The translations under genes and the position numbers were made by a program. This document shows, piece after piece, positions 29,208 to 32,091 of a stretch of 64,000 bases of DNA. The DNA is from Zootoca vivipara. Taxonomy: Eukaryota. Where the stretch lies: NCBI RefSeq assembly GCF_963506605.1, contig NC_083281.1:42780001-42844000 (forward strand), read 5' to 3'. Position 1 is the first letter of the stretch. The number at the start of each line of letters is the position of its first letter. Under the pieces are notes generated by a model. It ran no database searches. It saw only the letters and a list, made by a program, of their open reading frames with translations, and was not told the DNA's origin.

Positions 29208-29363
29208 TCAGCTGCACGCCCCCAGGGTGAGCTTGTCAAAGAGGTGCTCTCCCAAGCCATCCTGGGGCACTCCCAGGCGCCTCAAGTTAGATAGATGGTC
29301 TGCCAACTGCTTGATGGCCTTCACTTGTTCCTCCAAAAACTCAGACTTTAGAAAGTGACACAG
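29208..29363 (-). CDS. Ferritin-like gene, coding exon 4
   Basis: tgcag|CTG TGT CAC TTT...GCG TGC AGC TGA; encodes [20 protein letters not shown]...LFDKLTLG. Confidence 0.95.
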
Positions 29364-32091
29364 CTGCACAGAGAAGGCAAGCAAGGGAGGGAGAAGAATT
29401 GCTCAGGGCTTGCGCTTCCTTTTTCTTTTGAAACAGTCACTGGTGGTGAGTCCCAGCCCAGATCATCCTCACACCTGGGATCTGCTAGCTCAGAAAAAAA
29501 TAGATTTTGAATGCTCAAGGGCTTTGATACTAGATAAGACGAGCGCTGTGAGATCACATGAAAGTGATCTTGTGTATTATCATAGTGTGGCTGGGAAAGG
29601 CTTCTGCCTGAGCTATCATTGGCTCAAGCCAATGTTTGAGAATATGAAATAGTCTTTCCAAGGGGCTACCTGTCTCTAAATGTTGGGCCAACTCCTGGTC
29701 TGCATGTTTTGTTTAGAGATTCTAGTGTAGCCTTCCCCAACCTGGTGCCCTCCAGTTGGTTTGGGCTGCAACTCCCATCAGCCCGGACTCGCATGGCAAT
29801 GCTGGCTGGAGGAAGTTGTACTACAAAAATCCAGAGGGCACCAGGTGACTAGAATGAGCTTTTCAGTGCCTTCTCAGGGTCCTCCATTCTCCCCAAATGT
29901 CTACCCATTTATTTATTTTAATTTTGCTCACTAACCACAGGTGACATACATGAGGATCCTCCTTCTCCAGAGCCAGCTTGTGTAAGTCCAGGAGACCTTG
30001 GTTCACCTTTCCTTCCAGGCTTAGGGCACTCTGGAAGGCTTCAAGGCTAGACTGCCACTCATCCTGCTCTGGCTTCTGTTAAGGAGAGGCCGAGGAAGAA
30101 TTAGGTTAGCAAGACAGGCCTTGCCCTAATTTCCTATCAGAGTTCTTTGAGAGTATCAACAAGCATATAGATAGACATCCTACATCTTTGGTGGTGCTGT
30201 GACAAGGTGTTCTGCTTTTGGTCAGCAGTCTTTGAAGAAATCAGATTAATCTGTAATATAAATCCAACTCCTTTGTTAGCCTTGCTAGGAATAATAAATG
30301 AATCAAATCAACATTTATCTCATTGGGCGATGTTGGCACTGTTGCTGGTAGCCACTCATTTAGAAACAGCTATATTTTGGTGCGCTGCAACAGGCCTGGC
30401 AATAGACTCGTGGTATGTGCTCAGGTGTGGTCTGTAACCAGGACAAGGGCAAGATAAGTTCCTCATCCTTCTACTACGTATAGAATCCATCCATCTCCCA
30501 TTTGAGATGTGACCATCAGTCAAGACAACCTGCCCAGCCCCACAGAAACATCTGCATAGACCAGGCACCCCCAAACTGCGGCTCTCTAGATGTTTTGGCC
30601 TACAAGTCCCATGATCCCTAGCTAACAGGACCAGTAGTCAGGGATGATGGGAATTGTAGTCCAAAACATCTGGAGGGCCGAAGTTTGGGGATGCCTGGGA
30701 TAGACCTAGTGGATTAGAGTCTTTAATGTTCATTTTGAATGGGTTCTAAGTAGTGGTTCCAGCTTCAAGCTGCTGTTACACCTTTTTCCAAGGCACAAGA
30801 AATTTGCTGCTATTGTTTTAGTTTATTGTATTTTAAAGTATTTTATTCCATGTGAAAAGGCTTTTTTAATTTTAAAAGGCAAAATAAAAGATACAAGCAT
30901 ATAGATAGACATCCTGAAACTGGTAAACCAAACAGAGGTAGATGCCCTGATAGTGGCACCACAGGGAATGGACTAGTTTGCCCCAGTCGCTGGCTACTTT
31001 AATCAAGAAAGCAGACACCACACACCTGAATGTCTTGAAGAACGATGCACCCCCCTCGCTTGTTCTGGTATTTCAATAACATCTCTGCATATCCCCTCTT
31101 CTTGAGTGATTCCTCTTTCAAGAATGTAGCTACATGCTTGAGGGCAACATCATCACGGCTGAAGTAGTAGGACTGAGGTCAGGGAGGAGGAGAAGAACAG
31201 AAAAGTCCAGTCAATAATTAAGCGGACTATGCAGCAATTTAGCTGCTGTTTCAACCATCTGTGGATCAGGTTTAGGCAAAGGTGCCTGGCGGCTTTCTTA
31301 GTTCTTTGCTGCTAAAACATGGGAGCATGAAATTTGACCATTCACTGAGAACATTCCATTGGCAAGTGTTAGAATTTTCTGACAATTCCAGCCGGTCTCT
31401 TAAAATCTAAAGAATTATAAATCAATGTCAATATTGGCAAAACTGTTCAGTCTTTATTATGATGCACCTGTTGTTGTTAACAAGGCTGTTATGCTAAAGC
31501 AACCCAGGAAAATGACTCAGCCTTTACACTCTGACCTGACCAGTGACAGGAAATAGGGGACACTAACTGCCATGCCGGGGACCAACAGTAGCTTTGCTTA
31601 AAACGTTGGGAGTTCCAAATACGATTCATGGGAGAAACAGTGTTTGGATTTCAGGCAGGGCCAACACCAGGGTTGAGGAGATTCCCCAACTCTTGCTGGA
31701 CACCCCCCCCTCCCTGTCTAGGGTTTGTTGGCTTTGCCTGACATTTGCTCTAGCGCCACCTGCTGCTGACCTCCCTGCTTTCCACCCCACCAAGCACCAG
31801 CCACTGCTGAATGTTGCTTTTGGCACCAGCCGCATGAAATGTTCAGTTAAAACAGACTTGGGTCGGTGACACAACTCTCAGCCCCCTGCAACAGCACACA
31901 TGAGGTCATTTGACATGCACAAGGCAAAGGGGCTTCTCTCTGGTGATGCTCCCTCAAAACGCAAGAGAGATGAAAAAGCAAGCAGGTACCATGGAAAGAT
32001 AGACGTAACTGACATGAAGCTCCAGGTTGACCATGTGGTTCACAGCAGCCTCACAGTCCACGTGGTAGTTCTGCTGCACCTGGGAATTCAT
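29208..32091 (-). CDS. Ferritin heavy/middle-subunit-like protein, 176 aa, 4 exons, ferroxidase centre substituted
   Basis: Exons 32091-31990 (102 nt), 31172-31026 (147), 30075-29950 (126), 29363-29208 (156). Introns are phase 0, GT-AG, at the canonical vertebrate ferritin positions. Protein [176 protein letters not shown]. No stops or frameshifts. Confidence 0.95.
29950..30075 (-). CDS. Ferritin-like gene, coding exon 3
   Basis: aacag|AAG CCA GAG CAG GAT GAG TGG...GAT CCT CAT|gtatgt; encodes KPEQDEW...[15 protein letters not shown]. Confidence 0.95.
30562..30697. mobile_element. Palindromic hAT MITE (ACTACAA-TCCC family) in ferritin intron 2
   Basis: CAGGCACCCCCAAACT / AGTTTGGGGATGCCTG; TSD GCATAGAC/GGATAGAC; same family as 60206-60341 and 63798-63933. 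Confidence 0.8.
31026..31172 (-). CDS. Ferritin-like gene, coding exon 2
   Basis: ctcag|TCC TAC TAC TTC AGC CGT GAT GAT GTT GCC CTC...GAC ATT CAG|gtgtgt; RDDVAL and QNKRGG ferritin motifs. Confidence 0.95.
31990..32091 (-). CDS. Ferritin-like gene, coding exon 1
   Basis: ATG AAT TCC CAG GTG CAG CAG AAC TAC CAC...CTT TCC ATG|gtacct; encodes [34 protein letters not shown]. Confidence 0.93.

Follow-up and report, generated by a model that had tools for sequence, protein, structure and literature searches.

A squamate ferritin clade with lysines at the ferroxidase centre, and a candidate non-catalytic cage subunit in Zootoca vivipara

Introduction

The 64,000-nucleotide stretch of the Zootoca vivipara genome analysed here (NCBI RefSeq assembly GCF_963506605.1, contig NC_083281.1, positions 42,780,001 to 42,844,000 of the forward strand; below referred to as the window, with its first letter as position 1) carries a ferritin gene on its minus strand. 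The gene has four coding exons and encodes 176 amino acids (aa), and its product has basic residues at several positions that are acidic in the catalytic ferritin chains. It belongs to a squamate clade, hereafter the KK clade, in which most of these residues are shared. In our view, and with somewhat better than even confidence, its product is a non-catalytic, L-like cytosolic cage subunit that arose independently, out of the M-type ferritin lineage. Residues are given throughout in human FTH1 numbering, which equals the protein's own numbering plus 3, unless stated otherwise.

The ferritin gene and its transcripts

The gene runs from 32091 to 29208 (Table 1); a first-pass annotation of this DNA had placed the ferritin at 29300-31130, a span that lies within the gene and covers only part of it. 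Reading of the minus strand from 29150 to 32300 gives three introns, each in phase 0 and with GT-AG ends. The translations of all four exons are 100% identical to RefSeq XP_034973222.1 (P0357), a 'ferritin heavy chain A-like' protein of Zootoca vivipara, and the gene is thus already annotated in RefSeq rather than hidden. Homology searches were run per exon, and XP_034973222.1 served as the reference for all whole-protein steps. The Pfam family PF00210 is matched separately by exons 2, 3 and 4 (26.3, 23.6 and 17.5 bits, with a cut-off of 24.5 passed by exon 2) and is also carried by the identical database protein. Every exon matches solved ferritins, with the bullfrog H (1BG7) and bullfrog M chains at the top, and a search of the ESM Atlas returned ferritin clusters only.

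Table 1. Coordinates of the ferritin gene and of other features in the window (residues in the protein's own numbering unless marked FTH1)
Feature	Position	Strand	Remarks
5' untranslated region and alternative upstream exon ending at 32185	32092..32297	-	Contigs of RNA run X1
Coding exon 1, M1-M34, 34 aa	31990..32091	-	Holds E24 (=E27), Y31 (=Y34) and H19 at the NCOA4-binding arginine position
Exon 1 donor GT	31989-31988	-
Coding exon 2, S35-Q83, 49 aa	31026..31172	-	Helix B and start of the BC loop; Pfam and PDB matches
Helix-B motif E54-E-S-L-K-K-R-G-Y62 (FTH1 57-65)	31089..31115	-	Codons read
Coding exon 3, K84-H125, 42 aa	29950..30075	-	Helix C with E104 (=E107); PDB matches
Coding exon 4, L126-S176, 51 aa	29211-29363	-	Helices D and E; PDB matches
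3-fold pore motif L-C-H-F-L-K (FTH1 129-134)	29346..29363	-	Codons read
Stop codon	29210-29208	-	Closes exon 4 (29208..29363 including stop)
RBBP4-like WD40 exon	16062-16478	-
ZBTB8OS (archease) exons, ending near 27.3 kb	21814-27300	+
ZBTB8A-like C-terminal exon and BTB exon	35954-36568, 40361-41362	-
Second BTB zinc-finger gene	56109-57083	-

Splicing is documented by an RNA run of a related lacertid (X1), whose contigs join 29363 to 29950, 30075 to 31026 and 31172 to 31990. These joints coincide with the predicted exon borders and all read CT..AC on the plus strand. Further stretches covered by the X1 contigs are 29150-29363, 31990-32214 and 32185-32297, and word depth over the gene is 100-290 in this run of 77 Mb. 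The contigs diverge by a few percent from the window and carry the Podarcis-like S105R and L69F; ten coding codon differences are listed, seven of them synonymous and three residue-changing. Two minor forms occur in X1: one splices the upstream exon 32185-32297 directly to exon 2 (31172/32185), skipping coding exon 1, and the other uses an exon-3 donor 14 nucleotides further downstream (29363/29936; 29936-29949), which would shift the frame. RefSeq isoforms of 162 aa and 141 aa in Lacerta and Podarcis match these two forms.

Three RNA runs of Zootoca vivipara itself gave few exon reads, in two of the three runs, and one of these reads is spliced. In all of them the first mate lies on the plus strand, as an mRNA from the minus strand predicts. 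Expression looks uneven between samples. In the Zootoca run X21, all five exon-1 reads show C>T on the plus strand at both 32049 and 32059, one change giving A15T and the other being silent by hand reading; an allele or a close copy is possible. Intron 2 contains at 30561-30698 a palindromic repeat resembling a short interspersed nuclear element, which is matched by Rfam mir-5408 on both strands with 50-52 bits against a gathering score of 90. The thousands of RNA reads drawn by this repeat run into unrelated sequence, so their signal comes from repeats elsewhere in the genome.

Residues at the iron-handling sites

In the catalytic chains, E62 bridges both irons, H65 is a ligand of site A, and D131 and E134 line the 3-fold entry to the cage. 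In the Zootoca protein, helix B reads E-E-S-L-K-K-R-G-Y, with K61, K62, G64 and Y65, and the pore motif LCHFLK has H131 and K134 in place of D131 and E134, whereas E27, Y34, E107 and Q141 are retained. These residues, already listed in the first-pass annotation, were all read in the gene, and HMMER alignments place the canonical residues of the solved frog H/M and human H chains in the same columns. M and H chains have a full ferroxidase centre, with E27, E62 and H65 at site A, E61, E62, E107 and Q141 at site B, and in addition Y34, and an acidic D131/E134 3-fold pore; in the Zootoca protein neither is present, with K61, K62 and Y65 in the former and H131 and K134 in the latter. Among the cavity glutamates of the L chain at positions 57, 60, 61 and 64, E57 is the sole survivor (E57, L60, K61, G64). 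Two ferroxidase ligands are lacking (E62K, H65Y), as had been claimed for this gene. FTHL17 has the same K62, and there E62K is reported to be enough by itself to eliminate ferroxidase activity (PMC7760355). In L chains, a K62-E107 salt bridge is found in place of the iron site (PMC11396501). Judged by these residues, canonical ferroxidase activity has very likely been lost.

An old squamate clade

A search of a representative library with exon 2 led to a gecko orthologue (P0002/P0151) and was followed by word-index searches and a cluster look-up. The resulting orthologue clade has 13 members, from lacertids, an anguid, iguanians, skinks and geckos, those outside the lacertids being Elgaria, Sceloporus, Phrynosoma, Anolis sagrei, Tiliqua, Lerista, Paroedura, Heteronotia and Euleptes. 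Zootoca, Lacerta agilis and three species of Podarcis, five lacertids in all, show no variation in ESLKKRGY and LCHFLK. The clade was recovered in a quick tree of 90 rows (Shimodaira-Hasegawa-like approximate likelihood ratio test, SH-aLRT, 98) and in a careful tree of 59 rows (ultrafast bootstrap, UFboot, 100; SH-aLRT 99), and it stayed monophyletic in a quick tree of the 59 rows with 15 diagnostic columns masked (SH-aLRT 93); these trees took in no FTL and no avian ferritoid sequence. It sits inside the sauropsid M-like ferritins, as a group distinct from both the squamate M clade and the H-type chains. With the columns masked, geckos are the first to branch and the remaining order broadly follows that of the species, which favours orthology over convergence. 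The split between geckos and the other lizards falls at the base of the squamate crown group, about 190-200 million years ago, so the KK lineage would be about as old as squamates. According to the trees, it separated from the sauropsid M-type ferritins before the divergence of crown squamates. A sister link to a crocodilian pair (E62H/H65Q; SH-aLRT 85 in the 90-row tree) vanished when the diagnostic columns were masked, and we claim no pre-squamate origin. No clade member was seen in snakes, agamids, Varanus, Rhineura or Salvator in the database searched, which is no proof of loss.

Four changes, Q58E, E61K, Y137F and Y168H, are found in all 13 members, H60L and E134K in 12 each (with one F, and with Q in Elgaria, respectively) and E62K in 11, position 62 being C in Tiliqua and R in Lerista and never E. 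The orthologues thus do not carry the normal EEREH and CDFxE residues, which the first-pass annotation had named as the sign of drift or assembly error, and the fixed states differ from nearly all other vertebrate chains sampled. The marks that define the clade, namely E58, L/F60, K61, K/R/C62, K/Q134, F137, H168, the lack of Arg22 and monophyly, are all present. Other positions are free to vary: 64 (G/E/D/A), 65 (Y/D/N/Q/H) and 108, and likewise 22, the position of the NCOA4-binding arginine (R23 when the initiator Met is counted), which is H, N, C, Q or D. Positions 22, 64 and 65 each show four or five different residues within the clade. Position 131 is D in seven members, H in four lacertids and N in two geckos, and by a parsimony count has changed at least twice within the clade and never in the other rows. 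The rows sampled outside the clade hardly vary at 131 and 108, and nearly all of them have H65. The expectation that the altered residues are conserved across lizards is borne out for K61, K62 and K134, which are old, maintained states; it fails for H131, a lacertid novelty (other members having D or N), and for Y65 and G64, which stand at freely varying positions. Lack of constraint at position 65 is what one would expect once a metal site has been lost.

No member of the clade departs from E27, Y34 or E107, and most retain Q141. These residues, together with Q58E fixed beside the old site, are what one would look for if the centre had been remodelled but still oxidized iron, with E27, E107, Q141, Y34 and the new E58 binding the metal for a slow or alternative ferroxidase chemistry. 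We regard this as improbable: E62K on its own reportedly abolishes activity in FTHL17, the drift of position 65 is unexpected of a ligand, and L chains keep E107 and Y34 yet are inactive.

The proteins of the clade appear to be under constraint. Of 176 sites, 69 do not vary, variability by site follows that of the M-type paralogues (rho 0.42, p 9e-9), and intact reading frames of 175-181 aa are found in 13 species of five major squamate groups. The clade has evolved faster than the H-type chain (Zootoca-gecko identity 70-72% for the KK ferritin versus 88-89% for the H-type chain). This faster rate and the low read depth in the three same-species RNA runs are what a decaying duplicate or an assembly error might leave behind; however, the frames are intact, the same residues recur in five lacertid genomes, transcripts are correctly spliced and the listed coding differences are mostly synonymous. 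With splicing, RefSeq identity and conservation across the clade taken together, we rejected a pseudogene or an assembly error as close to refuted, and either is now scarcely credible.

Fold, dimerization, charge and iron regulation

An AlphaFold 2 (AF2) model of XP_034973222.1 (mean predicted local distance difference test, pLDDT, 91.2; predicted template modelling score, pTM, 0.86) has helices A to E at 11-39, 46-72, 93-120, 124-154 and 161-171. Foldseek aligns this model with human H and frog M ferritin at a template modelling (TM) score of 0.95 and a root-mean-square deviation of 1.4 Å. The four-helix scaffold is thus intact in the model, as had been stated from the sequence. The best matches in sequence and fold are the bullfrog M (1MFR) and H (1BG7) chains, which share the length of 176 aa, with 64-66% identity and TM scores of 0.92-0.95, and PDB searches place L chains lower than H/M chains.

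A dimer of the protein with the Zootoca H-type chain (P0170) is predicted with an interaction prediction score from aligned errors (ipSAE) of 0.71, against 0.00 for the best control. Contacts are reproduced between runs to at least 97%, the pLDDT of the partner is 91 or higher, and the interface is the canonical 2-fold one. In calibration of the tool, 51 of 78 solved complexes attained this mark, as did 2 of 108 mismatched pairs. Since ferritin dimers have already been solved, passing this mark shows likeness and is not proof of binding.

The net charge of the subunit is -6, equal to that of the Zootoca H-type chain, so the charge reversal is local. K61 and K62 follow E57 and the clade-specific E58 by four residues, the i/i+4 spacing at which E57-K61 and E58-K62 could form intrahelical salt bridges, and the 176-aa protein is extended at neither terminus and carries no nuclear signal of the SV40 type. 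An earlier proposal of a non-iron role, such as nucleic-acid or anion binding, is not supported here: the net charge is -6, the lysines probably pair with E57 and E58, K62 probably faces E107, and neither a tail nor a nuclear signal is present. Nucleic-acid binding in particular was rejected on charge, at -6 per subunit.

The gene also appears to lie outside the usual iron controls. An Rfam scan (E<=10) of 28800-33000 found no iron-responsive element (IRE), and no CAG[U/A]G loop with a 5-bp stem and a C bulge was found up to 33000. In FTH1, R23A blocks binding of NCOA4 (PMC6316710). With no IRE and no NCOA4 arginine, both the level and the turnover of the protein should be uncoupled from iron status.

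Comparison with known non-catalytic ferritins

Ferritin subunits that have lost catalysis are otherwise well known, and the KK clade appears to belong to none of the four groups with which we compared it, namely L chains, FTHL17, ferritoids and TsFerB. With the mammalian L chain (FTL), the KK protein shares the residues K62 and E107, which would lie opposite each other, as well as Y34, F137 and, by our reading, the lack of catalysis. The L chain has Y27, the glutamates 57/60/61/64 and an acidic D131/E134 pore, whereas the KK protein has E27, E57 alone and a basic pore. The L chain is known to co-assemble with H chains, whereas co-assembly of the KK protein is predicted only, and the two are probably of independent origin, with the KK protein deriving from the M-like lineage.

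FTHL17 is likewise a paralogue, in which E62K goes with a lack of ferroxidase activity and the other residues of the centre are largely kept (PMC7760355). It is an X-linked germline and embryonic mammalian gene and has D61; the KK gene differs in its ancestral three-intron structure, its autosomal-type context and its additional changes in the pore and in helix E.

The avian ferritoid complexes with the H chain and has no storage role of its own, birds reportedly having ferritoid but no L chains; ferritoids carry an SV40-type nuclear signal and have a net charge of about +7 (PMC13534657). Ferritoid and KK protein are both sauropsid members of the ferritin family, yet the latter has neither nuclear signal nor extension and a charge of -6. 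A regulator of the ferritoid or FTHL17 kind, which stores no iron and binds H ferritin or cages so as to change where they go or what becomes of them (delivery to the nucleus, for instance), has some precedent here: in birds, the H chain has ferritoid as a partner from its own family, FTHL17, which also has E62K, is in part a nuclear protein, and a dimer of the KK protein with an H-type chain is predicted. For the KK protein we give this only a slim chance, in view of exactly the M-chain length of 176 aa without terminal extension or SV40-type signal, a net charge of -6 versus the +7 reported for ferritoids, and three introns, which a retrogene would not have.

The best PDB match to exon 2 is TsFerB (PDB 9x0l, 24 chains; partner of TsFerA, 9x0k), which has K61, K62, R63 and W65. 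Its 24 chains show that a K61/K62 subunit can form an assembly of cage size. By sequence, TsFerB is a ferritin of invertebrate-like type (WYFDRDDVALKGF); its residue 27 is L, and its identity over exon 2 is only about 60%. The resemblance of TsFerB to the KK protein is convergent; literature searches found no paper on this ferritin.

This solved structure also bears on a further alternative, in which the KK protein would form homopolymer cages that, having a basic pore and neither ferroxidase site nor nucleation cluster, are closed to Fe2+ and serve a non-iron role, be it as a structural or abundant tissue protein, as a container for anions or other cargo or, in lacertids, as a metal buffer built on the His131 triad. 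Besides a K61/K62 subunit in a 24-chain assembly, such cages would fit the E134K pore change and the cavity-side E61K and H60L found across the clade, the lack of an IRE and of the NCOA4-binding arginine, and the patchy expression, high in X1 and near zero in the three same-species runs. However, the net charge is still -6, and at i/i+4 spacing the lysines meet acidic residues. No motif for binding or for a cargo was found, H131 is confined to one lineage, so that pore chemistry differs within the clade, and the heterodimer interface with an H-type chain is predicted to be intact. Altogether, we consider homopolymer cages of this kind rather unlikely.

Proposed function

For the non-catalytic, L-like subunit that we favour, the following picture may be drawn. 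Because the four-helix-bundle subunit and the 2-fold dimer interface are kept, the protein would be expected to enter 24-mer cages, alone or with catalytic H/M-type chains. Without the bridging ligand E62 and the site-A ligand H65, oxidation of Fe2+ at a di-iron centre would be impossible, and K62 would lie opposite the retained E107 and E27, much as the salt bridge of L chains takes the place of their metal site. The acid-to-base swap most likely stabilizes the bundle and creates no basic binding surface, because K61 and K62 stand one helical turn past E57 and E58. K134, joined in lacertids by H131, would make the pore of these subunits unattractive to Fe2+, and in mixed cages both catalytic and pore sites would be diluted. 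The protein could thereby act as an L-like modulator of cage composition, one that may escape iron-dependent translation and ferritinophagy.

Several points weigh against this proposal. Of the L-chain nucleation cluster at 57/60/61/64 there remains E57 alone, and the acidic pore of L chains is missing too, so the protein would not be a simple equivalent of the L chain. Conservation of E27, Y34, E107 and Q141 could mean residual metal binding, expression is very low in the three same-species RNA runs, and the dimer prediction may reflect the model's memory of solved dimers and is silent on the partner in cells. In addition, one sentence of a review gives reptiles H, L and M chains (PMC13534657). 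If reptilian L chains are real, a second non-catalytic chain needs an explanation of its own, and the idea that the KK protein replaces the L chain becomes weaker, whereas the non-catalytic reading itself does not. Our literature searches found no paper describing this clade.

A bolder statement goes further than a non-catalytic, L-like chain: the subunit would be shut off from iron at every level (ferroxidase centre, nucleation, pore, IRE and NCOA4) and have been kept so for about the whole age of squamates, with the cage repurposed for a non-iron function or as a brake on the iron loading of mixed cages. The KK chain would then be a third independent non-catalytic vertebrate chain beside the L chain and ferritoid. 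We put this forward tentatively, as possible but doubtful.

Neighbouring genes and other reptilian ferritins

ZBTB8OS and ZBTB8A flank the ferritin gene, each with its 3' end towards it. The neighbouring genes (Table 1) were found by motif search with short peptides. At 1415-2380 on the minus strand there is an open reading frame of 321 aa with motifs like those of reverse transcriptases (YADDT), probably a fragment of a long interspersed nuclear element.

Outside the window, on another, chromosome-sized contig of 78.3 Mb, Zootoca has a second M-like paralogue (P0314, XP_034958969.1) with damaged ferroxidase residues, namely EEKWED in helix B (E62K, H65D) and E at position 141; its lacertid orthologues form a cluster of eight sequences. 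Ferroxidase ligands have been lost repeatedly among sauropsid M-like ferritins (P0302, P0347, P0272, P0300, P0356, P0305, P0287 and P0321). Phrynocephalus has E27K, Y34F and E62K, the tuatara E27K, E62K and H65N, and Elgaria E62K; crocodilians have E62H and H65Q, and turtles E62Q/H/R and H65Y. Catalytically impaired ferritin copies seem from these sequences to be a general reptile theme.

Concluding remarks

Ferritin is a textbook case of a protein built from a catalytic and a non-catalytic subunit. The KK clade would add an independent non-catalytic chain that has arrived at another solution than the L chain, with K61 and K62, a basic pore and no nucleation cluster, and it may thus serve as a test of which features of the L chain a useful silent subunit needs. 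It also bears on how pore charge and the mix of subunits set iron uptake. The gene is readily testable by recombinant expression, and Anolis sagrei, which is tractable by CRISPR, has an orthologue. More broadly, the repeated loss of ligands in sauropsid M-like ferritins suggests that iron storage in reptiles may differ from the mammalian H/L scheme.

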